DNA of 64,000 bases, from the IMG/VR virus record IMGVR_UViG_3300029983_000007, positions 186,001 through 250,000 of that record. One strand, 5' to 3'. The notes beneath the pieces were generated by a model. The model worked only from the letters and a program-made list of their open reading frames with translations. It ran no database searches and was not told where the DNA came from. The position numbers and the translations under genes are program-made. Positions 20,843 to 64,000 of the stretch are shown piece by piece (within the stretch, counting starts at the first letter, position 1; every line of letters starts with the position of its first letter).

Positions 20843-22015
20843 TTATAGGTTAAATTTACTTGTATTTATTAAATAATCAAATTCTTTCTCTATTTTAGGA
20901 TTTAAAATGTCTTTAATATATTTTAAATTATCTATGTTGTCATCTAATATTGTTTTCTGATAGTCATATGATTTTAATATACTAATATCCATATGTCTTA
21001 ATTTTGATATGATAGATGGATATTGTTTCATTTTATTAATCCAAAAATCCTCATTGTAATTAGTTATGAATTCAGTAGTGAATGAATTTTCATATTTACC
21101 ATCATAATTACTTATAATCCAATATGCTAATTCTAAATACTTTGTACTTAAAATTTTACCATTTCTATAATACTTAAAAGGTAATCCTTGTATTATAGAA
21201 TAACCTTTATCTTTTACTTTATCAAGTATAACTCTTACAAATCTATCTAATTTTTCACTTATCATTAATGAAATCAAGTTATCTAATCTATATTGATATT
21301 TATCTTCTGAATGTGTAGCATATGAAGAAAATGAATAATCTTCCTCAATATTTTTAGAGTTAACTAAAAATGATACCGCATCTAAATTACCTTTATGAAT
21401 AACATTATAAATATGCCTATATGTTACTGGTACTCCTAAATTGATTAGATATTTTATAACATCAGGTTTGTCGTTGTATTTTGTTGCATAATCTATACAA
21501 TTTTCTGGTGCTCGTGAAAATGTAGCATCTTTCTTTTTATTCGGATCTAATCCTGTGCTAATTAAAAACTTAACAATATCTAATTTTCCTTTAAAACAAG
21601 CAGTCATTAATAAATCTTGATTGAAAGTTACTCCTAAATCTTTTAATAATTTGAATTTTTTGACATCTGAATTATGGTATACAAGATTATTTAAAAATTC
21701 TGGTTCTTTAATTAATGCTTTATAAATATTATCATTTTTTAATATAGATTTGAAATAAATATAAGGTAGTTCACAAACTGCTGTGTTATTTTTTGAAAAT
21801 TTTTTTGCTGGTACATAATCAACTAATTTGACTGCTAATTCTGGAAGCTCTCTACAAGCAAAATAGAATAATCTATCTTCTTCGTATTCTGTTATATTCT
21901 TTGTGTTGATAATATTTATATAATGATTAACATCAATAATAGATTTAAAATCTTCATAAAAGCTATAAAATACTGGCTTTGTCTTTTTCTCATATATTTT
22001 AAAATTTGTTATCAT
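20843..22015 (-). CDS. ankyrin-repeat protein with KFNL tail
   Basis: LMTACFKGKLDIVKFLISTGLDPN, CIDYA...VIKYLINLG, IHKGNLDAVSFLV; likely start MITNFKIYE at 22015; ends TSKFNL. Confidence 0.7.
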   Translation of the reverse strand: MITNFKIYEKKTKPVFYSFYEDFKSIIDVNHYINIINTKNITEYEEDRLFYFACRELPELAVKLVDYVPAKKFSKNNTAVCELPYIYFKSILKNDNIYKALIKEPEFLNNLVYHNSDVKKFKLLKDLGVTFNQDLLMTACFKGKLDIVKFLISTGLDPNKKKDATFSRAPENCIDYATKYNDKPDVIKYLINLGVPVTYRHIYNVIHKGNLDAVSFLVNSKNIEEDYSFSSYATHSEDKYQYRLDNLISLMISEKLDRFVRVILDKVKDKGYSIIQGLPFKYYRNGKILSTKYLELAYWIISNYDGKYENSFTTEFITNYNEDFWINKMKQYPSIISKLRHMDISILKSYDYQKTILDDNIDNLKYIKDILNPKIEKEFDYLINTSKFNL

Positions 22016-22037
22016 ATCATTATATATAAAAAACAAT

Positions 22038-23094
22038 TTAAAATTTTCTTTCGGTTTCCATTCTTTTCAATGTTTCATATGGTGTTTCTCCTTTTTTCAT
22101 TGTGTAGCTACATCCAGTTGTACCTCCTTTCCAGGTACCTTTTCTTTCACCTATATCATCACTAAATTCTATTTCAATGTCTTTCCTTATTAATCTAATA
22201 TACTTCAACCAAGTGAGCCATTTCCATCTCCATTCTCTTTCTTCTACTCTAATAGTTGCTAAACAATTTTGTTCTTCACCATATTTTGTTGTATATTTGT
22301 AAGTATATGTTTCAGAAAAAATAATATCTTTCCATTTTGGATGATTCCAAAACTCCATATTCCTTGATTTTCTTGTTTCACTAAGCCAAGTACCATCTTT
22401 GACTAGACAGCTTGTTCTTATCCATTCCCAATGCCAAGGTAGATAAAAAGATTTGTATGTATAACCATAATTTACACTAAATTGCTTATCAGAAAAAGAT
22501 ATACCATATGTTGGTGGAGTAGATTCATCATATAGATTCTTAGTGTATTTTATTTCTATTTTTGATTTTTTATCAGACAATGTTGATAATTTATCTTTTC
22601 TAATATCTTTAATACTTTTTTTTATTTTAATTTTTTTATAATGTCTCCATGGTAGATTTATAAACAATTTCCCCCATATAAAATATATTTGAAGATTTGG
22701 ACTTGGATCAAAATATCCTGCTATATGGTATTTTAAACTAAAACCACTCCAATCAGGAGTAAATTCAATATATTTATTTTTAAATGGTTTCAACTTCAAG
22801 TCTTGTTAATTTTATTATTCTTTTAACTAATATAATATTCTCTGGTAATTTTATGTTGTATAATTTTGTTAATGTGTCTTGTTTGAAATGAAATCCGTGA
22901 TCATAATCATATGCAATTTTTGCAAATTCGTCACCAGCATTCATCCAATCCATCCATTCAACTCCGCTATTATCTAAGCCATATGAAACACATTGTTTAT
23001 ATAGTTTCAATATTGCTGTTCTATTTTTTATAAATTTAGAGTAGTTGGTTTCTCTTTCGTCGTATTCCATGTTCATATTAGTATAAAATATCAA
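22038..23094 (-). CDS. two hypothetical proteins (22038-22799, 22780-23094)
   Basis: Overlapping ORFs of 253 and 104 aa; no family recognised. Confidence 0.6.
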
Positions 23095-23222
23095 ATATGT
23101 TTTTAAATCTGATATATTTAATAGTAAAGATAGTAAAGATAGTAAAAATAATTTGAATTAAAAACACAAAAATTAAATATGTTTTTCAAAAAATTATATA
23201 TACTGAAAAATAACAGTTAAAT

Positions 23223-23972
23223 ATGAGAAATTTGAAGAGTTTTAACCAAATGTTTGAATATGCCACAGGTAATAAATTGAAAAATAGATGGACAAAAAAT
23301 GATGTAATTATTGCATTATATTATGAAAAATTTGGATTGAGTAAAATTGGCATTGAAGATAGTAAAGTTGAAACCTTTGTGAATAAATATATTGGTTCAA
23401 ATGAACCGTCATTAAAGATGGAAGCACTAAATATAAGATATGCATTAGGAATAAAACATAATGAAGAACCAGAAGGATTATCAAGATATTCAAAAACTTG
23501 TATGGTAGTAGTAGATGAATATGATAGTTACACTGAATCAGAATTGAGAGAAATAGTAGAAGATATTATAGACAATACTACAGAAGAACAAATAGCTATA
23601 AATGTATCACAGGCTGAAAATCAAAGAGAAGAAGTTCTTAAAAGAAGAGAAGCAAAAAGAAAAGAAAAAGAACTTAATCCAAGTAGAAGAAGAGGAAGAC
23701 CAAGTCTTAGTGATGTTGAGATGAAACCTATGCCTAATGATGATTCAACTGATTCATATGGTAGACCAATATCTAAACTTGATAATATACAAACAGATGA
23801 ACAATCATTTGTTCAAGTTGGAGATGTACTTAATCATATTAAATTTGGTAGAGGTGAAGTAATGTCAGTAAATGGTAATTTGATTGAATTGGATTTCTTT
23901 GAAAATGATTTAGGATTAAAAAAAGTAGTATTTAAACCTGAATTATTTAAATGGACACCTGATTCATTCTAA
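23223..23972 (+). CDS. paralog of 18049-18825 with AT-hook-like motif and C-terminal Tudor-like domain
   Basis: RWTKNDVIIA, SLKMEALNIRY, RRRGRPS, VGDVLNHIKFGRGEVMSVNGNLIELDF. Confidence 0.55.
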   Translation: MRNLKSFNQMFEYATGNKLKNRWTKNDVIIALYYEKFGLSKIGIEDSKVETFVNKYIGSNEPSLKMEALNIRYALGIKHNEEPEGLSRYSKTCMVVVDEYDSYTESELREIVEDIIDNTTEEQIAINVSQAENQREEVLKRREAKRKEKELNPSRRRGRPSLSDVEMKPMPNDDSTDSYGRPISKLDNIQTDEQSFVQVGDVLNHIKFGRGEVMSVNGNLIELDFFENDLGLKKVVFKPELFKWTPDSF

Positions 23973-24027
23973 ATGAACCTTTAAAAATAAATATATAAAT
24001 AAAAATTCAAAAAACAAAAGAATTATT

Positions 24028-25362
24028 ATGACGCAAATAATCAAACTAAACAATCAACCTGAAAACTTAATCAGTCAATTAAAAGACAAAGAATTATTAA
24101 TATATGAAGATATTCAAGGCTCTCAAATATTTGTAAAATGGGATGGTACAAAATTCTTAATAAGACCAAAATCAATTAGTAACACAGATCTAAATTTTGT
24201 AGATCTGGCTATTCAAAAGTATTATAATAATGTATTTCAATATATTTATACCCTTCCCGATTTTGTAACTAATTTACTATCAAAGAATTGGTGGTTCTGT
24301 TTTGAGTATTTTCCAGATAATCAACCAGGTAACATAGAATATAAAAAAATTCCAAAGAACAATCTAATTTTAACTTGTATAGTTAAAGGTACAAAATATA
24401 AATATAATTATAATGAGATATTAGAATACTCTAAATTATTTAATGTAGATTCTTTACCAGTGATATTTAAAGGTAAATTGAACGATAAACAGTTAGAAGT
24501 GATAAACTTGTTCTTACATACATCAGAAGAAGATTTGGAGTATGTTTATGGTGAGTCTAACTTTGCATATTTTTTCTATAAGATATTAAATCCTCAATTA
24601 AATAATTCATTTTTAATGGATGGCTTCAATGACAATTTGGAAAAAATAATAGTTAGAATAAATGGTGATGATGAATTTTCATTTGAGATATTAAATCCAT
24701 CTTATGAAAGAATGAATCTTGATAGTAAAACAGATTACTTAGAAAATTATTCATTAATATTGCTAAATTTTTTAGAATTCATACAACTAATAAGTTTTGA
24801 GAAAGTTAAGCTTAAAGAAATAACAAAAGAAGAATTATATATTGAATTAATTTCAGCTATATTTAATGATTATGTTGAAAATATTACTAAAGAAATAAAG
24901 GATTGGAATTTAGCTATTCCTACATTTTTCTCAGAAGATAAATTTAAAATTAATACATTTTTGTTGAAAAATGATAAAACTATTGATTATATAAAATCTG
25001 ATGATAAAATTGAGTATATTTTTAAACTTATTTTGAGTTCATTTAATAAGAAATTGAAGAAGCCTATTGGCATTTTTAATGATAAAACACTAGAATTGTT
25101 TAATAGTGACGTAGATAAAATATCTATTTATTTAGATAATATATTAAAAGTAAATCGTGAATATTTACTTAAAAATAATGATTTGTTGAATTTTAAGGAT
25201 TATTTCAATGTTAATTTCAACACTGATTATAATGATATGATTTATCCAGATGTTTCAAAATTAGGTGCAGAAATACCATCAGGAGGAGAAAAAAAGAAAG
25301 AAAATCCAAAAGACACATTAAAAGGTGGTATACCAATTGATTTAAAGAAAGGTAAATTCTAA
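24028..25362 (+). CDS. possible RNA/ATP-dependent ligase-fold protein (degenerate)
   Basis: YEDIQGSQIFV resembles ligase motif I (KxDG) but lacks the Lys; FCFEYF resembles motif III; EKIIVR resembles motif IV. Confidence 0.35.
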   Translation: MTQIIKLNNQPENLISQLKDKELLIYEDIQGSQIFVKWDGTKFLIRPKSISNTDLNFVDLAIQKYYNNVFQYIYTLPDFVTNLLSKNWWFCFEYFPDNQPGNIEYKKIPKNNLILTCIVKGTKYKYNYNEILEYSKLFNVDSLPVIFKGKLNDKQLEVINLFLHTSEEDLEYVYGESNFAYFFYKILNPQLNNSFLMDGFNDNLEKIIVRINGDDEFSFEILNPSYERMNLDSKTDYLENYSLILLNFLEFIQLISFEKVKLKEITKEELYIELISAIFNDYVENITKEIKDWNLAIPTFFSEDKFKINTFLLKNDKTIDYIKSDDKIEYIFKLILSSFNKKLKKPIGIFNDKTLELFNSDVDKISIYLDNILKVNREYLLKNNDLLNFKDYFNVNFNTDYNDMIYPDVSKLGAEIPSGGEKKKENPKDTLKGGIPIDLKKGKF

Positions 25363-26356: not shown

Positions 26357-26535
26357 AATATTATCATTTTTTTCTGAAGTTCTTCTTTGATTGTAGAACT
26401 TTTACATAATTCAGATATTATACAATTCTCTAAGAATTTAGAACGGTTAGAAACTGTGTTATTTATAGTTTCTAATAATTCAGGATTTAATGATATTGAT
26501 ATTATAATTTTTTTATTCTTAACTTTCATAATCAT
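26353..26535 (-). CDS. ribbon-helix-helix DNA-binding protein
   Basis: KKIIISISLNPELLETINNTVSNRSKFLENCI; similar to 1689-1853; overlaps the endonuclease start. Confidence 0.65.
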   Translation of the reverse strand: MIMKVKNKKIIISISLNPELLETINNTVSNRSKFLENCIISELCKSSTIKEELQKKMIIL

Positions 26536-26642
26536 TTAGTATTTTTATTGTATATATTAATAAAATAAAGTCTAAAAATGCTAATAAAATAGCATTTTTT
26601 GTTAAAGTTATAATATTCAGAACATTAATAAAATAAACTTTT

Positions 26643-27109: not shown

Positions 27110-27165
27110 TTTAGTATTATCATATAAAAATGCACCATTATCAATAGTATCGATAATGGTGCATT

Positions 27166-27980
27166 TTATATGTTAAATTTATTTGTTATTATTCTAATTT
27201 CTGATATAAATCTATATGCAAGCCAGTCCTCTAAAATTGCGCCAGTTTCAATATCTTTAACATCAACACAAAAATCATCAATATCTTCTATTGTTAAGTA
27301 TTGATGCTCAATCATAATAGTTTCTTTTTGGTGCTCACTATCTTCATTATAAATTCTTAATACTAAGTATTTTTTACCTTTTTGTGGTTCACTATACATA
27401 TTATCATATCCACCATGAATACAAGTGACTTCATCTCCTAATGAGAAATATATATCATTATAATGTTCGAATATTTTAAAGTCTTTTATCATAAGTTAAA
27501 TTTGTTTGCTGTTTTATTCAATTTAAATTCTTCGAATTCTTCTGGTGTTAATACTCCAGTTGTTTTAAATATTACATATCCTTCGTTTTTTAAATCTTCT
27601 GTGAAATCTTTAATTTGATAATTTGGATAATAAAATACTTCAGACCAATCTTCATTACCTTCATCTGTATATTCACCTTCATCACTAAAATAATATCCTA
27701 TTGTAATACCAGGTGATTCACTCATAAATCCAAGTTGAGAAATATCACTAAATAATACTATTGATGAATTTGATACAATATCATCAAACAAATTTAAATA
27801 ATCACTTTCAACTTCATAATCAGAGTTATTAATTTCTTCTTTTCCTTCTTCTGTTAATGATATTTTTAAATTACCATTTTCTAATCTTTTCAATGTTAAA
27901 TATTCACCATTTCTTAATTCACTATCATCAAGTGATATCATATTTTCGTTTACATTAAATTTATTAAATTTTGTTATCAT
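27166..27980 (-). CDS. two FE/KFN-tagged proteins (27166-27492, 27489-27980)
   Basis: MIKDFKIFE...TNKFNI; MITKFNKFNVNE...ANKFNL. Confidence 0.75.
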
Positions 27981-28078
27981 ATATTAAATTTTTTTGTATC
28001 AAAATGTAGTTTCATTTTTTCTATGAAATCAGACATTACAATTTTTGGATTTTTCTTTATTTCTTCTAGATATATATT

Positions 28079-29004
28079 GAAGTCGTCTTGACTTTTTGAG
28101 GAGGGAAACAATATTTAAAAGAAGGGAACGTTTTGTATGCGACAAAACAACAATAACATTCCCTTCATGGTGTACCAAGTACTTGACAAAGATACAATAA
28201 GAATTGAAATACTGCCTCATTTATCGGTAGCAAAAAGAGGTTTTAAGACCACAAGTTGTCTGATTGAAGTAGTAAATAGCATTTTATATAAGCTGAAAAC
28301 AGGCTGTCAATGGTATCTGTTGCCAGTAAGAAGTTTGTTCTCAGATGTAGTCTTAAGCCATAAAACCATTTTTGGTCATTTTCGCAAATGGTGTAAGAGT
28401 GGTGAGTGGGAATACTGTTGGACGAAAATACTGGAAAAATACAAGTCGTTCTTGGATTTATCTAGTGCCGACTTGGATGGTAGTCATGCCACAGCACTTC
28501 GCGGAGGCGAAGAAGTGGCTTATCAGGGTAGGAAGAAAAGGAAAACGACAAATTCTTTGTTTCTTTCTGACCGACAGGGTTTACCTTTAGCTTTATCAAA
28601 TCCAATTGCAGGTAACCATAATGATTTATATGCAATTGAGAAATCCTCAGAAGAACTATTTTCAACTTTAGGGGAGGCAAAGATTAGTACAGATGGTCTT
28701 TTTATTAATGCTGATTCTGGTTTTGATTCAAAAAACTTTCGATCGATTTGTGAAAAATGGGGAGTAATTCCCAATGTTGCTTTCAACTATCGCAATGGTG
28801 AAAACAAAGATGAGTATTTATTAGATGATTTACTTTACAAACAAAGATACGTCATTGAAAGAACAAATGCTTGGATGGACAGTTTCAGATCGCTGCTTAA
28901 TAGATTTGATTATACGGTTTCAAGCTGGAAAAGCTTCAATTACATAGCTTTTATGATTATATTATTCAAGAAAATTAAAACTAACAAAAAGTCAAGATGA
29001 CTTC
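28079..29004 (+). mobile_element. IS5-family insertion sequence, 926 bp
   Basis: 19-bp terminal inverted repeats GAAGTCGTCTTGACTTTTT / AAAAAGTCAAGATGACTTC (1 mismatch), 3-bp direct repeat ATT on both sides, GC content above the flanks. Confidence 0.92.
28137..29000 (+). CDS. tnp: IS5-family DDE transposase
   Basis: LYKLKTGCQWYLLP, FRKWCKSG, LDGSH, GNHND, ADSGFD, RYVIERTNAWM. Confidence 0.95.
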   Translation: MRQNNNNIPFMVYQVLDKDTIRIEILPHLSVAKRGFKTTSCLIEVVNSILYKLKTGCQWYLLPVRSLFSDVVLSHKTIFGHFRKWCKSGEWEYCWTKILEKYKSFLDLSSADLDGSHATALRGGEEVAYQGRKKRKTTNSLFLSDRQGLPLALSNPIAGNHNDLYAIEKSSEELFSTLGEAKISTDGLFINADSGFDSKNFRSICEKWGVIPNVAFNYRNGENKDEYLLDDLLYKQRYVIERTNAWMDSFRSLLNRFDYTVSSWKSFNYIAFMIILFKKIKTNKKSR

Positions 29005-30061
29005 ATTATATGATTCACTTATATCATCTCCTGAAACACCATCATTATTATATTCTGATATTTTATCAGATAATCTTTCATTGAAAGTTTCATTTAGATC
29101 TTTTGTGCTTCCATTGTAACCATAGTAAGGTTGTGAATAATCAATGACATCATCTTGATAACTATCATCATATTTTTTTATGATAAATTTAGCTTTATAT
29201 GCATCAGTTTTTGTGTCAAATTTTAACCATAACATTGGTTCTTTACTGTTGTTATAATTATTCCATTTTATAGAATCTCTTGATACTCCAAAAAACGAAT
29301 ATGCCTTACCAATTATATCACTCCAAGCTTCTGCTTCATCTGCTGCTTCATGTCCTGAGCGAATACAATCTAATAACATTCCTTTAAGTTCATCCATATC
29401 ATATTCTTCTATTATATCAACTATATCAGAGTAATCAGAAATATTGTCAATATCTTCAATATCAATATCAATATTATTATTAATTAGTTCAAGAGTGAGT
29501 AATACCTTAATTATATCTATATTTTCTTTATCCAAAGTCATGTTATCATTAATACTAAAACTTGAGTCGTTATATTGAAATAAATCATATGCGTCACCAG
29601 ATAACATTGTTGAGATAAAATTATCTGATGTATTATCACCAATCTTAAAATAGTCAGAAAAAAAAGGAAAATCTTTAACAACTAGCCAATAATCATCATC
29701 ATCTTTTACTATCTCTTTACATTTTAGATTTTCTCCATAATAATTCAACAACTCAACATTGTCTTCGATTGTTTCTTTCAAATCAATATTATCATCTTCT
29801 AATGTATAAAAATCTCCTCTATAAAAATCAAATACCATTTTATCATCATTTTTGTTATTTGTATTTAAAAAAATGTTAGAAAAATTCCCTTTATATGAAT
29901 CCATATTAATATTACCATCTTTTGACCATTCAGTTAATGCATCAAATGAGTTTGCTTTTTCTATTTTCCAATTTTCATTTTCGAATAGTATTGTGAAATC
30001 TCTATTAGATTGCTCTAAATTTGAATCATTTATTTCCTTGAAATAATATAAATGTTTCATG

Positions 30062-30935
30062 TTATATGTTGTATTTTTTTGTTGTTTTATATATTTCTAT
30101 TCCACCAACCTGATAAATACAATTTAATAAATAAGAAATACTATCTACATCACCAATGAATCCTGGATTTGAATCGTCATCAAGATTATTTATTGGAAAT
30201 CCTTCAATAAATAATGATTCATCTAATCCTCCTGATTGCGCACCACTATTCCAAATTGTATATCTTACACCAAATATTTTAACTAATGCATAAGCACCTT
30301 GATATAAATCATGCACCCTGATATCATCAATTTTTAATATGTTATCATTGTATAATTGAGATATTATTTCAGTTAAACTCTCTTGTAAATAATAAATCAA
30401 TGTTGATTCTTCACTGTCATCGTCAGGATTGTCTTTAACATATTTCCAATTAATATGTCTGTTCAATTCACCTGATTCATATATTTTTAAGTGTTTCATA
30501 TTTTTATATGTTAAATTTTTTTGAAGAAAGATATATTTCTATACCACCAGATTTATAAATATCATTTAATAAATCTGATATTTCTTCAACATCTCCTTTA
30601 TAGCCAGGTATTTCATCTTCATCCATATTATTTATAGGAAATTTTCCAATGTATAAATAATCTAATGAATATATTTCACTTATTCTATAGTTTTTGTTAA
30701 ATATTCTAACTATAGCATAAGCGCCTTGAGATAAATCAAATCCTCTGATATTTATTATTTCTACTATATTATCATTATCTAATAAAGATACAACTTCTTC
30801 TATTTTATTTTGTAAATCTTTAATTAAACTAGCTTCATCACTATCATCATCAGGATTGTTTTTGACATAATTCCAATCAATATCTTTACTCCATTCACCA
30901 GTTTCATAGATTTTATATGATTTTATGTGTTTCAT
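30062..30935 (-). CDS. tandem paralog pair with FE/KFN tags (30062-30499, 30504-30935)
   Basis: Shared W.YVK.NPDDDS.E..LI..LQ...QGAYA...FPINN...GGIEIY..KK(Y/F)NI. Confidence 0.8.
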
Positions 30936-30965
30936 TAAAATATTTTTTATTTATATATAAAAAAA

Positions 30966-31513: not shown

Positions 31514-31584
31514 TGCTCTATGTTGTAATGATAGCAATCAGGAATTTGGATCCTGCAGATTAGGTTTGAGTCCTAATAGAGCAA
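31514..31584 (+). tRNA. trnQ: tRNA-Gln(UUG), atypical
   Basis: Acceptor TGCTCTA/TAGAGCA, anticodon arm CAGGA-ATTTGGA-TCCTG, T arm TTAGG-TTTGAGT-CCTAA; A19/U56 compensatory pair; no encoded CCA. Confidence 0.8.
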
Positions 31585-31598
31585 CAACACAATGTCAC

Positions 31599-31683
31599 TG
31601 CCTTGTGATGGAATTGGTTAAACATGTCAGTCTTTGAAACTGATGCTCATATGAGCTTGTGGGTTCGAATCCCACTAAGGCGA
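31599..31683 (+). tRNA. class II-like (long variable arm) tRNA with Gln anticodon UUG
   Basis: Acceptor TGCCTTG/TAAGGCG, D loop AATTGGTTAAA, anticodon arm TCAGT-CTTTGAA-ACTGA, variable hairpin GCTC-ATAT-GAGC, T arm GTGGG-TTCGAAT-CCCAC. Confidence 0.85.
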
Positions 31684-31693
31684 CAAATTATAT

Positions 31694-31766
31694 TGTTCAT
31701 TAGCGCAATTGGTAGAGCGTCAGATTCTGGATCTGAAGGTTGAAAGTCCGAATCTTTCATGAATAA
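31694..31766 (+). tRNA. trnQ: tRNA-Gln(CUG)
   Basis: Acceptor TGTTCAT/ATGAATA, D arm GCGC-AATTGGTA-GAGC, anticodon arm TCAGA-TTCTGGA-TCTGA, T arm GAAAG-TCCGAAT-CTTTC. Confidence 0.8.
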
Positions 31767-31775
31767 CAAATACAT

Positions 31776-31847
31776 TCTCATATTGTATAACGGCTATTAC
31801 ATTTGTTTTTGGAACAAATAATCTAGGTTCAACTCCTAGTGTGAGAA
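31776..31847 (+). tRNA. trnQ: tRNA-Gln(UUG)
   Basis: Acceptor TCTCATA/TGTGAGA, anticodon arm TTTGT-TTTTGGA-ACAAA, T arm CTAGG-TTCAACT-CCTAG. Confidence 0.8.
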
Positions 31848-31885
31848 CAAAAAACTCTGAAATTTAAATTTCAGAGTTTTTTTTA
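31848..31885. terminator. bidirectional terminator after the tRNA cluster
   Basis: AAAAACTCTGAAATTT/AAATTTCAGAGTTTTT inverted repeat. Confidence 0.75.
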
Positions 31886-32142
31886 TAATCATTGTACTTT
31901 TTTAAGAATTCCTCATCATTTGATTTATTAAATTTCATTTGATATTGTAATATTTGACCTAATTCTATTCCAGATAATTCACCTGAATCAAAGCCAAGTT
32001 CTTTTATTATTTGAAATATTGTTTTGTTTTTCATATCTTCTTTACTTGTTGTTCTGAATTTGAATTCTAATTCCATTGCTAATTTTTTAATTTTTTCAGG
32101 AATATCATATTCAAAAAATTCATAAACTTTAATATGCTTCAT
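31864..32142 (-). CDS. small protein with N-terminal FE tag
   Basis: MKHIKVYEFFE; TTTTTTTATATATA upstream. Confidence 0.6.
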   Translation of the reverse strand: MKHIKVYEFFEYDIPEKIKKLAMELEFKFRTTSKEDMKNKTIFQIIKELGFDSGELSGIELGQILQYQMKFNKSNDEEFLKKYNDYKKNSEI

Positions 32143-32251
32143 ATGTTATTTTTTATGATATATATAAAAAAAATAAGTGCTATAATTTGTGTTTAGATCT
32201 TCACAGACATATTCACATAGCACTTATTACCAATAATCATTTATGACGACA

Positions 32252-37395: not shown

Positions 37396-38578
37396 ATGAA
37401 AATTTTAAAATTTTATGAAAGTTTAACAGATGACGTAAAAATAGGAGATTATGCATTGATGAAAATTGCTGTTTATAATAGTTTTGTGACTAGCGATAAG
37501 ATATACTATAAATATATAAATACAACAATTGGTAAGATATGTAACATACGTAAATATAATGGAATTAATATTTCATATGAAAATGTTCCTTATGAAATTA
37601 AAGGTTATTTTTGTAACAATTCTGATGGTTTATATGAAAGAAATTTTAGTAATGATGAACTATTCGAATATGGTAAAACAATAGAGGAATTACAACTGAA
37701 ATTACAAACAAAAAAATTTAATATATGAAATATTTGAAATATTATGAAAGTTTAACAGATAATTTAAATGTTGGTGATTATGTATTGATTAAAATTAACA
37801 TATCTAAATATAATCAAAAACAAATAGAAACAGAAAATTTTATAAATAGTACTATTGGCAAAATATATAGTATTGATAATAGATACATAAATACTGATAT
37901 TCGTGTATTATATGACGATGTACCTGAAAGTATCAAAAGTTATTTTAATATTAAAAATGGTTTATGTATAAGAAGTTTTGATATTGATAGAATAGTTGAT
38001 CATAGTAAAACAATAGAAGAATTAAAAATGAAAATAGAAACAAATAAATTTAATATATGAAATATTTAAAAAATTTTGAAGGAAGAGAATCTGATTATAG
38101 TAAAAAGGATAAATATCAATATTTAGAAATAGAAGAAGAAAAAATGATTAGTGATTTTATCACTGATTATATAAAAAACTTGAATATTTTAGATAAAATT
38201 GATAAATTAACATTATCTGAATTAGAATCAGATAGATTTGAATATAGAACAATATTCAATAATCTTATTGGAATAAACAACTCATATACTGAGCCTAATA
38301 GTTTTTATAGAAATATAGACAATTTTATTAAAGAACATAAAATTGAATCATCTATTACTACTAACCGTAATACTGTGTTTAAAATTGAAGATAAAATGTA
38401 TAAATACTACAAACCTGAATTTATTAAAAAAGTAGACAATAGAATAATTGAATTTGTGTCTAATATAACAGATTTAGCTAAATTTAAAAAATATTATGAG
38501 AAATATTCAAACAATTTTAGTTCTAAGGTAAAAGGAGCTTTTGATTTTATGTTTAACGCTGATAAATTCAATTTGTGA
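37396..38578 (+). CDS. three FE/KFN-tagged proteins (37396-37728, 37725-38060, 38057-38578)
   Basis: MKILKFYE..TKKFNI; MKYLKYYE..TNKFNI; MKYLKNFE..ADKFNL; ATGA overlaps; the first two share the GDY-hydrophobic..IGKI..Y.NVP.E core. Confidence 0.8.
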
Positions 38579-38622: not shown

Positions 38623-39135
38623 ATGAAAAAAATTAAATATTTCGAATCATTTGTATCAGAAAATATTGTATCAGAAAATATTGTATCAGAAAATGTTAAA
38701 GATAAAGTAAATGAAGATGTTGAAGATAAAGTAAATGAAAATATATGGGCTGAGTTATTTTCTAATGTATCATCATTGAGTTCAATTGAACAAGTTTATT
38801 ATTGGCTAGGTATTTCAATTGATGCTGTTGCTGTAGGTTTAATAGGAAAAAATATTGCATCAGTAGCTACTAGTGGTGTAGTTGAATTGTTGAAAAATAA
38901 CAAATTAGGTGAACGTGGTAAGGAGTTTGCTGAAATGATTACAAGACTAGGACAAAAAGGCGCTTCATTATTTAAAAGAAAAGATGTTGATGAAGAAGTT
39001 GTGGAAGAAGTTAATATTGAATTAGCACATTACAACGATATTATAGACAGATTAAAACAAGGTGAATTGGGAATAGAAGGTGTTAATCTTGCTAAAAAAG
39101 TAGAAAATGCACAAGAAGCTGCTGAAGAAGTATAA
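38623..39135 (+). CDS. acidic protein with N-terminal FE tag and VSENI repeats
   Basis: MKKIKYFESFVSENIVSENIVSENV. Confidence 0.65.
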   Translation: MKKIKYFESFVSENIVSENIVSENVKDKVNEDVEDKVNENIWAELFSNVSSLSSIEQVYYWLGISIDAVAVGLIGKNIASVATSGVVELLKNNKLGERGKEFAEMITRLGQKGASLFKRKDVDEEVVEEVNIELAHYNDIIDRLKQGELGIEGVNLAKKVENAQEAAEEV

Positions 39136-41902: not shown

Positions 41903-42568
41903 TTATATGTTAAACTTTTTTGTGTTGTATATCATATTAACACTTTTAAATTCATTGCACAATTCTTCTATTATTTTAAGATTTGATTTTTTCATCAAAT
42001 GATATATAAAATCATATCCTTTATTGTCTTTTATTTCTATATTTGGTTCTTCTTTGAGAAGATTTTTTATCATTTTCAAAGAAACATTGATATCTATTCT
42101 TATCTCTGAATTTTCTGCAACTTTAATTAATGGAGTTCTATTAAAAATGTCTGTTTGTTTATTTAAATCTGTTAAAGGTATTAGTATATGTAAGAAACTC
42201 CAGAATTTATTTATATAATCTGTTGACTGATGTTCTAATCCTTGTAATTTATCTATCATTTTAAACATTGCAGAGTCATTATCAAATGGAAATTTTCCAA
42301 GTTCTGGTGTATAAGAAAATATATTTGAATCTGCTCCTTTATCTAAAAGTATTTTACCAAATTCAAATCCACTGTTATTAATAGCAATTAATAATGGAGT
42401 CCAACCATTATCAATTTCTTGATAATTGATATTCACGTCTGGATGTTCATCAAGAAATTCTATAAATTTTGGTAGCATAAATTGATTTTCATGATAGCAT
42501 AAACTTATAAGCCTTTTTTCGTCCTCATTATTATTTATGATATTTTCAAAATATTTTAAATGCTTCAT
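41903..42568 (-). CDS. ankyrin-repeat protein with FE/KFN tags
   Basis: GWTPLLIAINNSGFEFGKILLDKGADSN, RTPLIKVA..IKNLL..PNIEIKDNKG; MKHLKYFE...TKKFNI. Confidence 0.75.
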   Translation of the reverse strand: MKHLKYFENIINNNEDEKRLISLCYHENQFMLPKFIEFLDEHPDVNINYQEIDNGWTPLLIAINNSGFEFGKILLDKGADSNIFSYTPELGKFPFDNDSAMFKMIDKLQGLEHQSTDYINKFWSFLHILIPLTDLNKQTDIFNRTPLIKVAENSEIRIDINVSLKMIKNLLKEEPNIEIKDNKGYDFIYHLMKKSNLKIIEELCNEFKSVNMIYNTKKFNI

Positions 42569-42569
42569 A

Positions 42570-45500
42570 TTATAAGTTAAATTTGTTTGTTGTGTTTTTA
42601 AACTCCCAATCTACTATCCATTTATCAAGTTCAACTTCTTCGTTCAATTCACAATAAACTAAATCAATTTTTATTGATCTATTTCTAGCACAGAACGCCT
42701 CATATAAGTCATTAAGATTATCCATTGCACTAAATTCTCTTAACATATCGTTATTGAATTTATCATCATCTCCATGATTATGATATACTTCATATATTAA
42801 ATTTTTAAGATGAATAAATCCTTGAAGTTCATTATTACAAAGATATACTTCTGGATTATCATTATTATCATTACTTATAATTGTGCAATAATTACTCCAT
42901 TCCTCATTATTTATTTCTTCAAATATTTTAGTGTATTTTCCATTATTATAAGTTAAATTTTGACAAGTCATTTCTTCTTTGTTTAGCATTTGTATATGAT
43001 TGCTTACCTTGTTCATCTCCACCTTGTCTTTTATTTTTATCAATCAAACCTACTAGCCAAGATTCCATTGAACTTGAACTTTTACCTTCAATATCTTCTC
43101 TTGCTTCTTTTGGTAGCCATATATTATACATTTTTATTTCTGGTTGAAATCTTGATCTTATTTCTAAACCTGCCATTGATGATAGACTATGAAGATCTGG
43201 TGTAATTCTAACCATATTTTCAATATCTAACTCCTTTTTGTATAATCCTCCTTTTGTTTCTTTAAATTTGTCTGATGCAAGGAAAACATAAAAATCGTGT
43301 GTTTCATAGTCAGGATTTTCACTTAATAAATCTCCTAGAATGTCAACTTTTTCTTGTTCTTTCTTAATCTGTTCTTCATCTTTAGCTTCGTAAGTTTTCA
43401 TGTGTTTCATATTTTTAATTTGTTTATTTTATATGTTAAATTTATCTAAATTTATAAACATAGATACATCTATATTATCTGATAATGAATCATAAATTTT
43501 TTTTATAAGTTTTAAACTAATTCCATTTGGAATGCCAGAAAACTCATGTTTTTTCAATGATTTCATTGTTTTAAGTACTAAGTTATTTTTAATAATATAG
43601 TCTTTAATATTAATATTAAGAGGAGTAAATTTCAACCAATTTGTCCATTCAATTAAATAATAAAAATCTTTTGTGTTTCTATTATCATGAAATAATAAAA
43701 ATACTAAATTATATTTTGAATTCTTATTGTCACCTATGTAACAGCAAATTGTTTCATCTTGTATATACATTTGTCCTGGTATCAAATTTGGATATCCAAT
43801 CATATTGTCATACTTGTTTTCAAATTCTTTAATATGTATCATATATTAAATTTTTTTGATAATAATGCTATTTCAATATCTTCTTTGTTTTCAGAATTCA
43901 CTATTATTGTTCCATACCTGGTTCTTTTGAATATTTTACCAGTTTCTTCATCAAATCTAAACCATGGGTGCTGTATTTCATATGGTACATTTTCATACTC
44001 TATAGATACGTTATCAAATATTTTCTTAGGATCTTCTATTTCTATAATTCTACCGATATTATTATTTATAAAATACATAAATTCTTTTGAACCCATACCT
44101 CTGTATCCATGAATATTAGCTAATGCATAATCTCCAATTTTTATATCCTTTTTATTGTAATTTTCAACTGATTTTAAGTGTTTCATAAGTTAAATTTTTC
44201 TGCTTTTAATGTTGCATTAAAACTATCTTCTAAATTAGTCAATAATGACTCTATTTCATTTGATGGTATAATATAGTTACAATATCCATGTGTAGAATTA
44301 TCTATTATATAATTATAAAATATTGTTTTTATCAAATCAAATAGTATATAGTCGTTTGCTGTTTTGCTTTGTATTACAGTAGCTAATCTATAGTTATTGT
44401 CATAATCTAAATTTAATACAATTTCAAATAAACAATAAGAATAATAAGAATAATCTATAATTATCTTATCATGAGAATCAACTTTCATCTTTAGTGTTGT
44501 TTTATTCTCTTCTGTGATATCTAATTTTTTAATTAATGATAACAGTTTTTTAAATCTATCACCTATATTATATAATGTATTATTTAATGTTTTTAAATCT
44601 CCATTTTTGACTACTTTTTTATATCTGTGAATATATTTCATATTATAAATTAAATTTATTTGAATCAATATATACTCTCAATTCATCTTCACTATCAGAC
44701 CAATATTTTAGTTCTGACATTGGAAATTCCGCAGTACATCCTATTGATTTACAATATATTAAAAAATGAGATTCATCTACAATAGAATCAATTTTAAATA
44801 TGCTACTTTTTGATTCTTCGTAAAAATCTAGATTGCTTGTTATATATCGTTCAGATTTTATTATTACATAATCTCCTTCTTTTGGATATGTGTGAACCAT
44901 TTCATATGTTTTAAGATATTTCATTTAAATGTTAAATTTTTTTGACAATAATAATGCTTCCAAATCTTCTTTATATTTAGATTCATGAGTGATTTCATAA
45001 TTTCTAGTACTATAGGTACTATCTTTTCCTAATATGACATTAAAAGGTATTATTTCTTTATCATATTGTACTTTTATTGAGTTTTCATTTCCTATCGGAT
45101 TTATATGTATTGCAACTATTTGTCCAATATTATTATTAAAAAATTTTCTTTCATTAGGAGTAACAGAACAAGGATATATTATTACATAATTTCCTATTCT
45201 TTCTTTTTCCTCTGATGTTAATTGTTTTTCAAATGATTTTAAATATCTCATAAATCCATCAATCTGTTTGTGTAAAGATAATAACAAAAAGCAGTAAATA
45301 TCTTATCTCTTGAATAATTTTCAACTAAAATAGGAATATTTAAATATTCTTTATATTTATCAGATATACCATCTTCAAAATTAACTATAAAATCATCAAA
45401 TATGGTGAGTGAATTGTCCATTATAATCTTAGAATAAATTTTATAAGGATCTTTATCTTTTGACTTTTGTTTAAATTCATCTGCTGTTTTTGCTCTTTCT

Positions 45501-46485
45501 ACATTTATAAATAATATTTCACGAATTTCATCTGCACTTATATTTGATTGAACATTTTTTAAATGATTTACAATAATATCTGATATAATATTTGCTTTTT
45601 TGCCATACATATTTTTAACAATTCTTGTGAAGTTTTCTGCAAAATCTATTTTAAATTGATTTGTGAATTTATCGAATTCTACTTCAGACTTTTTTATTTT
45701 TCTTTCTGCTGAATAGTCAGATAACCAACCACCTGATACAATAACATATGATTTACATCCCCTTTTAATTTTACTTAAAATATCAGTTATTGTTGTTTTT
45801 ACTCTATCTACTTTTTTCCAATCTTCGTTTCCAAAATCATCTCTTTCTATCAATTCAAATGTTTCAATATAATATTCTGATTCATGTGAGAATGACACAA
45901 ATATTTTATCCTTGCAAATGGATATTATCAAATTATTTGTTGGTTCTGTTAAATATTTGATTATTTCTTTTTTAACTTTCAATGATTTCCATTCTGCATC
46001 ACTTGAAATTTCATAATTTCTTTGCATACTTTTCATTACAGAATTTGGTACTCCTATATTAGTAAGAGATGTCTTTTCGAAAATTTTATATGTTTTTATG
46101 TGTATCATATGTTAAATTTATTTGTATCAAGTTTTATTTTTAAAATTTCTTTATTTTTATCGAATGAAATTTCATTGTTAATACTCTGTATATTAAAATC
46201 AACTGTGAATGTTGCAATTGCATAGTTTTCATTATAATTAAATTTTCTAAATTTAGATAATATATTTTTTGGTATATTATCATATTTAATATGTAAAATC
46301 CAAATGTTATTCAAGCATTCACATTTATTTATCATTACACCTATATTATTGTCAATGAAATTTTTTGCGTCATCAGTATATATAGTTGTATGGTCTTCAT
46401 CTAAATATTTAGATGATATTATAATATAATTATTATAATTTGGTATTTCATTTTTATTCTCAAATATTTTAAAAATTGTAATCAT
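42570..46485 (-). CDS. operon of nine FE/KFN-tagged small proteins (42570, 42946, 43429, 43839, 44183, 44643, 44925, 45248, 46105)
   Basis: N-termini such as MKHMKTYE, MIHIKEFE, MKHLKSVE, MKYLKTYE, MRYLKSFE, MIHIKTYKIFE, MITIFKIFE; eight end in KFN[IL]; overlapping junctions; (TA)n run upstream near 46508-46523. Confidence 0.8.
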
Positions 46486-46619
46486 AAAAAATTAATTTTC
46501 AATTTTAATATATATATATATATTAAATTTGAAAGTAGAATTTTTAAAATTAATTAATTAAAAAATCATTTTTTTTATTTAATATATAATACAAATAATA
46601 AAAAAAACAAATTAAAAAT

Positions 46620-60514: not shown

Positions 60515-60592
60515 TAATAAGAATTTATTTTTATTTTTTATAGAAAGAAAAAAGCTTTTAGTTTTTTAATATATAAAGAAAAAAGAATTTTA

Positions 60593-61174
60593 ATGGAAAA
60601 ATTTACACAGATAAAAGATAAGCCAGTTATACCAGATGAAGAAACGTTATTTGATGGTAAATATTTAGATGTGATTCAATATAAGGAGACTGAAATACTA
60701 AAAGGGCACGATTGTGTTGCCATATTGCCATATTTCAGGGATGAGGCTACATTTCTTATGAGATTAGAATATCTTCCTGCATATCAATATAAAAATAAAG
60801 AAATTCCAAATCTTAGAAATGTGACTAATTATTTGACTGTTATTACTGGAGGAATTGAAGAAAATGAAACACCAGAACAAACAATAAGAAGAGAATTATA
60901 TGAAGAAGGAGGTATAGTTTTAAATAATTTGTATCAATTTGATGTTGAAGGTCCATTCTTCACTGATAAATATAGTACAACTCAATTATATCTTTGCTTT
61001 TTAGAATTACCAGTTAATACTTATCGTCAAATGAAACCACCTACTGATGGCTCTAAAAATGAAAAATTATCTAAATGTATAAGAGTTTCTATATCAGATG
61101 TTAATCAAATAGTAAATAATGATTTAGTTACTAAATGTTTAATTACAAAATTATTAAAAAGAATTGAATCATAA
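60593..61174 (+). CDS. NUDIX hydrolase
   Basis: Nudix box GGIEENETPEQTIRRELYEEGG. Confidence 0.9.
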   Translation: MEKFTQIKDKPVIPDEETLFDGKYLDVIQYKETEILKGHDCVAILPYFRDEATFLMRLEYLPAYQYKNKEIPNLRNVTNYLTVITGGIEENETPEQTIRRELYEEGGIVLNNLYQFDVEGPFFTDKYSTTQLYLCFLELPVNTYRQMKPPTDGSKNEKLSKCIRVSISDVNQIVNNDLVTKCLITKLLKRIES

Positions 61175-64000
61175 TGAATCATTTGAAAACATTTGAAAAA
61201 TTGAATGAAAATGAGCCAGAAGTTGGTGATTATATACTTGCAAAATGGAAAAATGCTGCTGATGATCATCCTGCTAATATTTTTGTAGCAAATAATATAG
61301 GTAAATTGATAAAAATTGAAATTGATAAATATGATGTTGTATTTTTTTTAGTAAAATATAATAATATACCAAAAGAGTTAGAATTATATAAATCTATGAA
61401 TAATAATACTTCTTTTGAATTAAAAAAAGAAGATTTAATAAAATGGAGTAAAAATGAAGAAGATTTAGAAATGATATTACAATCAAACAAATTTAACTTA
61501 TGATTACAAAATTTAAAATATTTGAAAATGTCAATGAAAATGAGCCAGAAGTAGGTGATTATGTGATTGCATCTTCAAATGATTTTCTTATTGATTTAAA
61601 TGAATTCACGAAAAATAGAATTGGTAGATTATATAACATATTTAAGCCTTTGTATGTAGATGATTTATCATACACTGTCATATATGATAATATACCAAAA
61701 GAGTTAGATTGTTATACATTTAAAGTATATGATGAAGAAGCAATATCATTAGACAAAGAAGATATAAAATATTGGTCTAAAGATAAAGAAGATTTAGAAA
61801 AAATATTAATGACAAATAAATTTAACTTATGAAACACATTAAAGAATATAAAATATTTGAAGGAGAATACTACACAGATTATGAATTACAAGAATTTAAA
61901 AATAAATTGCCAAAATTTGCAAGATTTATTAGGAGATTCATAATTCAATTTGGTTATGATTGTGTTGATATGAGTGAAGGAGATGATATTCAATTTTCAT
62001 TTTATGCTAAAAATACTAATAAAGTATTATTTTCTATAATGACTGGAAATGATGAGTATTTTGTATTAGATTCATTTAGAAATAGTAATAATATTATAGT
62101 ATCAGAAATACCTGAATACTTAAAAACAATAAACGGAATTAGATTTAATAAACAAATATTAAATTCTGATGAATATGAATATTATATCACAGGTGATGTT
62201 GATGATGTTATCAATCAAATAGGCAAAGATAAATTAATTATGTTTGCAAGCGCAAAAAAATTTAATGTGTAATGAAGTATTTAAAAACATTTGAAAATAT
62301 TAAAAAAAGTCTTAATTTAGGAGATTATGTAATATGTGAAGAGATACCATCTAATGGATTAGAAAAAAGAAATTTCAAAGATGTTATTGAATTTGAGAGA
62401 TACAACATTGGTAAATATGTAAAGAGTATTAATGGAAATGGGAAATTCAAATATGCAATTTATTATGATAATATACCTCAAAAATTTAAAGATAAATTTT
62501 TTATGAGAGAAGGTGATATAGATAAATATTGTAGAGTAATGTCTAGAAAAGAAATAATTTTTAATTCAAAAAATAAAGAAGAATTAGAAGCAATAATTAA
62601 TGCAAATAAATTTAACATATGAAATATTTAAAAACATTTGAAAAAAAATCTAAAAATATTAGTAATGTTGATGATATTAAAAAATTGTTAAGTCATTTAA
62701 TTGAGATTTTCACATATTATGGTATTGATTATTCAAACTACTATGAAAATAGAAAATATGAAACAGAGTTTCATTCTTCTGGTACAACACTGTTTGAAGT
62801 TTCAGTTGATACTGTTCTTGGTAGTCACTTATCTATTCATATATTCAATGGTGATCCATTTTATATCTTTCTGTTGTTTTATTTTAAAAACATTAAAGAG
62901 TTAAAAATTGATTTTGAAAGTAACACTAAGATAGTATTTGATATAATAGGAGATGTGGATAATATTATTGAACAAATAACAAATGATGACATTGATTCTA
63001 ATTTTAAATTACATAATTCAGTAAATAAATTTAACTTATGAAGTATATAAAGAAATATGAAAAAATTGTAGAATATGATGATATAGAAATATCAGAAGGA
63101 TCATATTGGATTATTTATGGAAGTGTATATGATGCAATATTAATTCTTAAAAAATTCAAAAAGTTATTTCCAAGTGATGAATATGAACTTGATATAAATA
63201 GAACAATAAATAGATTATATAAAGATAAAGGAAGAAATATTATTGGAGTGTATTGTTATTTTAGTTCATATGATTTTTCTTATTCATTATTAAAAAATGA
63301 AGAAGATAAAATTAGAATATATAATAATTGGCTAAAAGTTGATGTATATGACTTTAAAGGTGAACTAAAACTAGTTAATCATGAATTAGTATTAGATGAT
63401 TCTGAGAAAATAATGCTTGATAATATAAACAAATTTAATATATGAAATACATTAAAACATTTGAAAAAGTTATTTATCCATTACTATATAAAGAAGGAGA
63501 TTATGTTTTATTAGACACGGAGAAAATAAATAAAAATAATAAATCTAATAATTATACTGATCAAAATATTAATTATGATAATAGATTTGGAATTATAAAC
63601 ACACAAGAATTTGATGATAGTTTTCCATTTCCGTATTTGGTTAAAACATATGCAGCAGGAGAAGATGAAGAAGGACTAAATACCTCAGATAGTGAAATAG
63701 TAAGATTAATGACGCCAGAAGAAATTAAAAATTTCAAAATAAAAATTGATGCAAATAAATTCAATATATGAAATACATTAAAACATTTGAAAATAAAAAT
63801 AAAGTATTTAAAGTAGGACAATATGTAATTGCTGAAAATATACCATATAAACCAAATCTTAAAAGTTTTTTTAATGATAATATAGGATTAATTATTAAAA
63901 AAGAAAAATATACTAATAGTATTAATGTAAAAATCACAGAATACATTGTAAAATACGAAAATATTCCAGATAATATAGAAACATATTTCATGAAAAACTC
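61174..64000 (+). CDS. operon of FE/KFN-tagged small proteins (61174, 61500, 61829, 62272, 62619, 63038, 63442, and 63768 truncated by the window end)
   Basis: MNHLKTFE, MITKFKIFE, MKHIKEYKIFE, MKYLKTFE (x2), MKYIKKYE, MKYIKTFE (x2); seven complete members end in KFN[ILV]; overlapping junctions. Confidence 0.85.

Follow-up and report, generated by a model that had tools for sequence, protein, structure and literature searches.

We analysed a 64,000-nucleotide stretch of viral DNA (hereafter the window) in which many small genes encode proteins that share short peptides at both ends. The window covers bases 186001-250000 of G000, a linear IMG/VR virus record 330,208 bp long (Joint Genome Institute sample 3300029983). 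The N-terminal peptide, mainly M-K-[YH]-[IL]-K-x-[FY]-E, is called the N-tag below, and the C-terminal one, K[FY]N[ILVM], the C-tag. Between positions 20843 and 64000, 24 complete open reading frames (ORFs) end in [x]K[FY]N[ILV], and one more, starting at 63768, runs off the 3' end. About 22 of the 24 complete ORFs begin MK[HY][LI]Kx[FY]E or MIxxFK[IL][FY]E, in agreement with a preliminary description of this DNA, according to which most tailed proteins carry the N-terminal motif. The same description had put the tailed proteins at about 25, a number that holds for the window only, as the record contains 102.

The record has a G+C content of 24% and a CheckV completeness of 46%, and one of its products is identical to a protein on contigs of up to 711 kb. 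It encodes a phage-type DNA polymerase, collagen-like tail fibres, a UvsW-like helicase and the small T4-specific ORFs Phage_30_3 and T4_Y16D. These features make it roughly half of a T4-related phage genome of some 0.7 Mb. DNA of the window was found in peat metagenome runs. Gene calling was crude (first ATG, greedy non-overlap) and gave 580 genes at 91% coding.

The shared termini and the cores that carry them

The C-tag closes 102 of the 580 genes, where 0.76 would be expected from the proteome-wide tetrapeptide frequency; 102 of 102 tails lie at the C-terminus, and just 29 copies of the motif are internal in 99,767 residues. The two tags were strongly associated (odds ratio 314, p = 4e-74): 84 genes carry both and 471 carry neither, with the C-tag occurring alone in 18 and the N-tag alone in 7. 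Across the 102 tailed genes the N-tag reads M1, K2 (72 genes), Y/H3 (68), I/L4 (70), K5 (70), x6, F/Y7 (74) and E8 (67), and is followed by a polar, unconserved stretch. One minor form, MIT[ND]FK[IL][FY]E, is the main core shifted by one residue; another is MKxx[KQ][FY][NE]E. At the other end, K at -4, F/Y at -3 and N at -2 are present in all 102 and L/I at -1 in 101, with [A/T/S] at -6 and [N/K/D] at -5. The C-tag common to all subfamilies thus comprises only about six residues, [ATS][NKD]K[FY]N[LI], because the helix ahead of it differs between subfamilies (SKNKEELExxI versus KYPxxYKxYLMKK). There are 23 groups of tailed genes, the largest with 10 members, and most members are linked through ATGA overlaps; the tailed genes of the window are listed in Table 1.

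Table 1. Tagged genes and promoter-like motifs in the window (positions within the window)
Position	Strand	Length (aa)	Feature	N-terminus	C-terminus	Remarks
20843..22015	-	390	tagged gene, ankyrin core	MITNFKIYE	SKFNL	standing alone
22021..22033	-		T-run+ATATATA promoter-like motif			6 nt upstream of 20843-22015 gene
27166..27492	-	108	tagged gene	MIKDFKIFE	NKFNI	
27489..27980	-	163	tagged gene	MITKFNKFN	NKFNL	
28981..30060	-	359	N-tag-like start only	MKHLYYFKE		no KFN tail; outside the counted N-tag pattern
30062..30499	-	145	tagged gene	MKHLKIYE	KKYNI	
30504..30935	-	143	tagged gene	MKHIKSYKIYE	KKFNI	
30952..30965	-		T-run+ATATATA promoter-like motif			head of 30935-28981 operon
31864..32142	-	92	N-tag-only gene	MKHIKVYEF		promoter-like motif at 32159-32173
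37396..37728	+	110	tagged gene, barrel subfamily	MKILKFYE	KKFNI	
37725..38060	+	111	tagged gene, barrel subfamily	MKYLKYYE	NKFNI	
38057..38578	+	173	tagged gene	MKYLKNFE	DKFNL	tail TTC AAT TTG TGA, no overlapping downstream start
38623..39135	+	170	N-tag-only gene	MKKIKYFES		
41903..42568	-	221	tagged gene, ankyrin core	MKHLKYFE	KKFNI	AlphaFold model 2
42570..43016	-	148	tagged gene		NKFNL	N-terminus uncertain because of overlap with upstream gene
42946..43410	-	154	tagged gene	MKHMKTYE	SKFNL	
43429..43842	-	137	tagged gene	MIHIKEFE	DKFNI	
43839..44186	-	115	tagged gene, barrel subfamily	MKHLKSVE	KKFNI	
44183..44641	-	152	tagged gene	MKYIHRYK	EKFNL	
44643..44924	-	93	tagged gene, barrel subfamily	MKYLKTYE	NKFNL	
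44925..45251	-	108	tagged gene, barrel subfamily	MRYLKSFE	KKFNI	
45248..46108	-	286	N-tag-only gene	MIHIKTYKIFE		within array
46105..46485	-	126	tagged gene	MITIFKIFE	NKFNI	heads 8-gene array; promoter-like motif at 46517-46527
60562..60575	+		T-run+AATATATA promoter-like motif			ahead of NUDIX gene (60593-61174)
60593-61174	+		NUDIX gene			heads 10-gene tagged array
61174..61503	+	109	tagged gene	MNHLKTFE	NKFNL	
61500..61832	+	110	tagged gene	MITKFKIFE	NKFNL	
61829..62272	+	147	tagged gene	MKHIKEYKIFE	KKFNV	
62272..62622	+	116	tagged gene, barrel subfamily			AlphaFold model 1; first row of alignment A1 = profile query
62619..63041	+	140	tagged gene	MKYLKTFE	NKFNL	no ORF >=50 aa at matching place of related phage L023
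63038..63445	+	135	tagged gene	MKYIKKYE	NKFNI	no counterpart in L023
63442..63771	+	109	tagged gene	MKYIKTFE	NKFNI	
63768..64000	+		5' part of tagged gene		NKFNI	cut by window end (genome 249768-250094)

By BLASTP the tailed proteins fall into subfamilies of 24, 10, 3 and 2, and for 54 of them no paralogue was hit below 1e-5. AlphaFold models the 24-member subfamily (alignment A1) as a small beta-barrel with a C-terminal helix (predicted local distance difference test score, pLDDT, 83), and the model is weakly similar to chromo-barrel and Tudor domains (Foldseek E 0.02 or worse). Ankyrin repeats characterise the 10-member subfamily and three further members, with the product of the 41903-42568 gene again modelled at pLDDT 83. 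Another tagged member gave weak ExoX_C and CBM39 matches, and a tagged 222-aa member (L002:2774-3439, genome 19774-20442) matches the DMP19 DNA-mimic family over a short stretch (E = 3.7e-6); such a core might possibly serve an anti-restriction or anti-nucleoid role. The remaining tagged cores had no match in Pfam or PHROGs. The cores had initially been called unrelated, which is borne out for the differing barrel and ankyrin folds but does not extend to members of the same BLASTP subfamily.

Both structure models were built from shallow alignments. In each, confidence is lowest in the N-tag (pLDDT 42 and 50), and the final 5-6 residues also lack structure (pLDDT ~60, and below 50), such that the tags are predicted to be exposed termini outside either fold. 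We rejected a single homologous fold with conserved ends, since the ankyrin and barrel cores differ and the termini lie outside both. Short exposed terminal peptides on unrelated binding domains have the look of a targeting or recognition signal. The models also bear on the idea of mutual binding between N- and C-tags, either intramolecular or between family members, which would give head-to-tail oligomers or mixed assemblies. The strong co-occurrence of the tags would suit this arrangement, as would the resemblance of some N-tag variants, containing KFNE or K-x-F-E, to KFN[LI]; however, the AlphaFold monomer models leave the termini unpaired, and across the whole genome of a complete relative, G041, the N-tag occurs without the C-tag. 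We consider tag-to-tag binding very improbable. A natural fusion of two barrel-family members was seen in a 243-aa metagenome protein (P0008), in which the tail of the first copy has decayed to ...DASKLQVN while an internal N-tag (KHLKLYE) and the final KYNL are retained.

The family is seen in viral and metagenomic sequence only. A profile made from A1 found 2,725 clusters (50% identity representatives) at E <=1e-3 and 1,640 at <=1e-10. Of the best 148 clusters, 142 have the tail K[FY]N[ILVM], with KYNL its most frequent form, and 124 start with a strict N-tag. All clusters looked up are unnamed metagenome proteins, and the nearest ESM Atlas clusters are 100% viral. A degenerate IUPAC DNA pattern for the junction between consecutive tagged genes had no match in 185,579 prokaryote species genomes and matched more than 116 stretches in IMG/VR, where 116 fetched loci yielded 402 distinct tailed ORFs. 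No homologues were detected in cultured phages by tblastn, the family is absent from the 735-kb phage LR756501, and none of the literature searched mentions the tag motifs.

Constraint on the tags and recombination at their junctions

The constraint on the tags acts at the protein level. In the preliminary description the tail was said to survive synonymous changes, and to be more than a start-site artefact, on the strength of a gene that ends AAA TTC AAT TTG TGA at 38578 with no overlapping gene. That ending is present, followed by a 44-nt gap, and the argument extends to the whole record. The invariant Asn is encoded by AAC in 51 tails and AAT in 51, compared with 13:87 in the rest of the genome; Phe is encoded by TTT (72) or TTC (20), and the last codon is ATA, TTA, CTA or TTG. 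An overlapping downstream start is absent at 41 tails and a same-strand gene within 30 nt at 22, with the motif unchanged. The codon usage of the tail, together with these 41 cases, led us to reject a start-site or overlap artefact. In seven orthologous family pairs with L023, a related phage of ~80% DNA identity to the record, the N-tag, the last 15 codons and the cores had synonymous substitution rates (dS) of 0.446, 0.441 and 0.451, respectively. Since tag dS equals core dS and synonymous codons vary, a pure DNA or RNA element was rejected as the main cause. The cores themselves evolve fast, yet under purifying selection: their pooled ratio of non-synonymous to synonymous rates was ~0.41 (0.2 to 0.7 for single genes), as against 0.08 for the neighbouring NUDIX gene.

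The junctions do recombine. A family gene follows within 30 nt after 69 of the 102 tailed genes, overlapping in 54 cases, and non-orthologous junctions have 36-82 nt in common at 77-98% identity. Differences between G000 and L023 start and stop at tag junctions; one cassette lacks an intact ORF in L023 and two lack a counterpart. It could be argued from this that the conserved ends are a by-product or tool of array dynamics, the ~45-nt junction (tail codons, ATGA overlap, N-tag codons) serving as a homology arm for unequal crossing-over and the exchange of cassettes and/or as a translational-coupling element and the peptides having little function. It would also fit that the C-tag belongs to a clade with tandem arrays, while the relative lacking it has scattered single N-tagged genes. 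We nevertheless regard this explanation as improbable. Third codon positions vary freely while the residues are fixed, tags and cores do not differ in dS, and the motif is kept in the 22 tails that have no close same-strand neighbour. Moreover, the tail is kept across the 2,725 clusters at 50% identity, and in G041 the N-tag stands on isolated genes. Junction recombination is real, but looks like a secondary consequence that helps the family expand, because the residues are fixed with free third positions, tag and core dS are equal and isolated tags persist.

Promoters, head genes and relatives

Two upstream motifs dominate the record, TAnnTTTG and a T-run followed by (A)ATATATA. The first lies 20-27 nt ahead of the start codons of 55 genes, including those for the Cas3-like helicase (e.g. 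upstream of window 13291) and NAD synthetase, and matches the -7 box of Bacteroidota promoters. The labels of metagenome-assembled genomes containing clade head proteins disagree (Saprospiraceae for P0330, Candidatus Dojkabacteria for P0182), so the host of the phage is uncertain. The second motif precedes 57 genes, including both collagen-like tail-fibre genes and that of a TIG-domain protein. An upstream gap is present at 18 family array heads; the ATATATA motif precedes 12 of these and TAnnTTTG precedes 1, compared with 55 and 54 of 223 other genes; the enrichment of ATATATA at array heads over other genes has an odds ratio of 6.1 (p = 4e-4). On clade contigs carrying head genes (below), the same motif stands ahead of the portal, protease, capsid-protein, 267/300-aa and tagged 102-aa genes. 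The late promoter of T4 is TATAAATA, and, judged by its motif and with a gp55-like factor present, the ATATATA element looks like its counterpart. The protease and capsid-protein genes both have a conserved element, AAAATAGAAAAAAATGACATTTTT, immediately ahead of their ATATATA motif (L147 ~13070-13100 and 15545-15575; L149 upstream of 14429 and 16878), which may provide additional regulation of the head proteins that are most abundant.

Four smaller contigs of the clade with tagged junctions, one of which (61 kb) comes from the record's own sample, match Peptidase_S77 at 25-26 bits. The sole family these head contigs have in common with the record is that of a homing endonuclease (up to 87.5% amino-acid identity); such limited overlap is expected for non-overlapping parts of similar genomes. 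The head-module contig is linked to the record through the common sample, composition, tag family and endonuclease family. Gene order on these contigs resembles the T4 head gene cluster. They encode a gp55-like late factor (48% identical to a relative matching phrog_234), a gp4 head completion protein (phrog_218; by tblastn found in 2,388 phage records, mostly of T4-like genera), a portal (phrog_213), a protease of ~790 aa (phrog_207, E = 4e-31, with PF03420 and PF20034 Peptidase_S80 hits) fused to a scaffold-like part, and a 609-aa capsid protein of the Pfam family Gp23 (PF07068). Directly before the protease gene, two contigs have a tagged 102-aa gene. By these sequence matches, the clade appears to build a T4-type prohead, with gp23 capsid protein, S77/S80 protease, portal, gp4 and scaffold-like part.

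Two of the head proteins have distinctive sequences of their own. In L147:13149-15530 (contig G030) the scaffold-like part spans ~490 aa and contains a 14-residue repeat, YSEYIAENLDxxIx, in ~12 copies. The EYIAE within this repeat is reminiscent of EFIAE in the capsid targeting sequence (CTS) of T4; an acidic Pro/Glu-rich stretch and a conserved end, ...FDKLNS, follow the repeats. The N-terminus of the capsid protein has an invariant WMAEYAEMH.

The protease-scaffold protein is widespread in IMG/VR (121 loci). Its relatives include G041, a complete genome of 639,979 bp with terminal repeats, whose protease is ~48% identical. This genome encodes 12-13 proteins starting MK[YHF][IL]KxFE, scattered singly and in 8 of 12 cases behind the ATATATA motif, whereas the K[FY]N[ILVM] tail is found on 0 of its 974 proteins. 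An N-tagged ORF is also present in 37 of 78 head-module loci of wider relatives. The commonest such ORF encodes 157-158 aa (M[KR]H[LI]RKFEEL...), and in the one locus examined (L224) the portal gene follows it immediately. Because the N-tag occurs in G041 and in head-module loci, it is probably older than the C-tag, linked to the head module and able to work alone. By their distribution the two tags appear to be separable, and the C-tag seems to be an innovation of the window's clade, acquired along with the tandem arrays and the large expansion.

Head proteins of the relatives have related C-termini. The protease-scaffold protein ends there in F[KR]N[ILV] (FKNI 27, FKNL 11, FKNV 3, FRNI 2) or otherwise in FRRV, FKKI or FKSI, and the gp4 homologue ends in KKFN[VL], extending past the conserved ITE..L core of T4-like gp4 proteins. 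None of the 1,452 other proteins of the two genomes ends in [FY]KN[ILVM] or K[FY]N[ILVM]. These endings hint that a K/F-N-hydrophobic C-terminus may be a head-assembly contact in the lineage.

Several other loci of the window and record were observed in passing. A second paralogous family of ~12-14 genes of ~90 aa occupies window 4969-8836 (+), with similar small genes at 497-1077 (-). Its members have starts such as MKNQNLKIGDKLLC and ends such as KLEKLNEK, lack the KFN tail and contain an IGDK[LI]LC that recalls the GDYV[IL] start of the tagged barrel subfamily. An endonuclease-like family (DUF723/DUF4379) has 13 members of 330-630 aa, at window 1853-3151 and in 12 paralogues (e.g. genome 150228-151868). 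Copies on related contigs match homing/HNH endonuclease PHROGs and, up to 87.5% identical, interrupt the head module beside the portal, protease and capsid genes. At window 12000-13170 there is a CRISPR-like array of ~18 repeat units (16 overlapping copies at 66-nt spacing in the repeat search), with CTGATACTTATATAATTCCGCAAGGGAATCACAACAT as the repeat and spacers of ~30 nt. Three unnamed genes (361, 291 and 237 aa; window 9238-11907) precede it, and it lies directly upstream of a Cas3-like HD-helicase gene (PF18019, PF22590; window 13291-15564). The array and the Cas3-like gene look like a phage-borne type I-like CRISPR-Cas locus. Four tRNA-Gln genes stand in tandem at window 31514-31848, three with TTG anticodons and one with CTG, out of 13 tRNAs in the record, several of them unusually long (82-90 nt). 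The record also encodes NAD synthetase, and L155, a contig overlapping the record start, encodes a further NAD salvage enzyme, NAPRTase, along with the translation/rescue factors IF3 and SmpB; genes of both kinds are typical of very large phages.

A candidate packaging system and its known parallels

Taken by analogy with T4, the tagged proteins may be packaged cargo, addressed by a CTS-like leader and by a second, clade-specific C-terminal signal. Loading of late-made cargo in this way is the best-supported interpretation because it follows the same logic as T4 on a T4-type head, although we would place it a little below an even chance. In such a system the N-tag, with its polar linker, would be the counterpart of the T4 CTS and would bind the scaffolding core of a T4-type prohead. 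Late-made cargo would thereby end up inside the head and be delivered along with the DNA. The C-tag, [ATS][NKD]-K-[FY]-N-[LI]-COOH, would be a second signal, recognised as a free C-terminus; its reader would probably be some part of the prohead, for example the portal, the neck or the inside of the capsid. The cargo would consist of small binding-domain proteins, very numerous and fast-evolving. That these proteins are expressed late, packaged, possibly cleaved and delivered to the host, and what their receptor may be, we infer here from the genes.

A bolder version of the packaging model can be formulated from the tails of the relatives' head proteins. An ancestral CTS-like N-tag and a new C-tag copying the phage's own head-protein tails (gp4, protease-scaffold) might form a two-ended address system, able to load essentially any small domain into the head for delivery with DNA. 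The outcome would be 100-200+ packaged anti-host proteins, cassette-shuffled at the junctions. We regard this version as possible but doubtful.

The preliminary description had already drawn the T4 CTS analogy. It gains circumstantial support from the T4-type head genes of the clade, the common promoter motif, the exposed tags and rare CTS-like variants, and loses from the acidity of the proteins and the missing [ILV]-x-E. Indeed, a number of observations weigh against packaging. The tagged family is acidic (median isoelectric point 5.3), in contrast to the basic internal proteins of T4. The T4 gp21 and gp23 families were not found on the 330-kb record, which covers ~46% of the genome, nor on five large related fragments. 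Cleavage after the FE, as originally proposed, has no sequence support, as [ILV]-x-E is missing from the main N-tag variant and not enriched in the N-terminal 22 residues (38% versus 30%). In the window's own clade, gp4 ends differently from KKFN[VL] and the scaffold end FDKLNS resembles the cargo tail weakly (top 5% by position-specific scoring matrix), so that tail mimicry was set aside there. ATATATA is the commonest upstream motif in G041 (138 of 484 upstream regions), and because it is so common there the class may not mean strictly late expression. Finally, more than 100 cargo species, and probably more than 200 in the full genome, would be unprecedented.

An alternative is that the tagged proteins are cytoplasmic effectors that are not packaged, whose variable cores bind host targets and whose tags are read by some other common partner, be it a phage or host chaperone, an adaptor/protease, a secretion route or a phage-built compartment. 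A protease variant would entail timed degradation, or delivery of the bound host targets to the protease. A variable binding domain with a short exposed tag is also what adaptor systems look like; F-N-[LI]-COOH has the form of a class II PDZ ligand (hydrophobic-x-hydrophobic at a free C-terminus), and a Glu-rich -14 to -11 stretch with a hydrophobic -3 recalls C-terminal secretion signals. The acidity of the proteins favours a reader outside the virion, and the complete relative G041 lacks the C-tag despite the same head-module gene order. However, PDZ (PDZ_2) and ClpP genes were not found on the 330-kb fragment, ~46% of the genome. The arrays use the promoter class of the head genes and not the host-like TAnnTTTG, N-tagged ORFs lie inside head-module loci of relatives, and the junction pattern is absent from the prokaryote genomes searched. 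On balance, we judge the cytoplasmic alternative unlikely.

Should the tags prove to be loading signals, the variety of proteins packed by this lineage would far exceed that of any known virion. The role of a sixth of the genes in a 0.7-Mb phage genome would then be explained, and nature would offer a pair of peptides with which arbitrary proteins could be directed into a very large capsid. The tags provide a simple sequence rule to predict candidate packaged effectors or anti-defence proteins in uncultured megaphages, with ~2,700 clusters matching one subfamily. Were packaging to prove wrong, the combination of an invariant C-terminal tetrapeptide with an 8-residue N-tag on unrelated folds would still point to a common reader yet to be found.

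The nearest parallels are found among mobile cassettes, docking peptides and packaged phage proteins. Promoter-stem-loop (PeSL) cassettes in the hyperplastic regions of T4-type genomes are arrays of small ORFans with short conserved flanks that act as sites of gain and loss. The tagged arrays resemble these, or integron-like cassettes, in that small ORFan genes are gained and lost at short conserved flanks. Unlike in PeSL cassettes, the flanks here are coding and constrained at the amino-acid level; DNA-level constraint on the flanks was not seen, as they are as variable at synonymous sites as the cores. As to docking, encapsulin cargo-loading peptides and the C-termini of scaffolding proteins and of the HK97 prohead protease are likewise short C-terminal peptides on unrelated cargo. 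The related tails of the protease-scaffold and gp4 proteins (FKN[ILV], KKFN[VL]) in relatives recall such peptides, which dock onto HK97-fold shells. The consensus of the C-tag differs from that of the encapsulin and HK97 peptides, however, the scaffold tail of the window's clade is FDKLNS, and docking is here an analogy.

Giant phages of the phiKZ and SPN3US type are described as packing dozens of proteins, with an S80/S77-type prohead protease that cuts after Glu (PMC7411985, PMC10052503). The clade protease is similar in carrying PF20034 Peptidase_S80 hits. The propeptides of those phages are long, and do not form a common 8-residue tag. We know of no common C-terminal tag on their ejection or inner-body proteins.

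The closest parallel is the CTS of T4. Ten N-terminal residues suffice to load foreign proteins into T4 heads, residues 4 and 7 acting in targeting and 8 and 10 in processing, and T4 Alt has propeptides at both termini (PMC9026906). The internal proteins of T-even phages are diverse defence proteins with only the CTS in common (PMC3012670). The tagged family differs in having more than 100 members in tandem arrays, as against 3-7 internal proteins in T4, in its acidic rather than basic proteins, in the lack of an [LI]-x-E processing site from the main N-tag variant and in an invariant C-terminal K-F-N-[LI] without a T4 counterpart. T4 CTS cargo is packaged and cleaved, whereas the tagged family is known here from genes. 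As with IPI, IPII, IPIII and Alt, a short N-terminal leader is carried by unrelated, fast-evolving small proteins, here with cores of the barrel, ankyrin and other types (84 of the 102 tailed genes, and 7 without the tail), and the clade contigs point to a phage that assembles its head from gp23, a gp21-type protease and a scaffold core. In the N-tag, as in the T4 CTS, position 3 or 4 is aromatic and position 7 is Phe/Tyr, followed by Glu. The full Y4-F7-[IL]8-E10 pattern occurs in 10 of the 402 tailed ORFs of related contigs and in 2 genes of G000. Rare variants of the N-tag, MKKYNQFINE and MKTYQQFNE, nearly match the MKTYQEFIAE of T4, and the first of these holds all four key residues of the T4 CTS (4, 7, 8 and 10).

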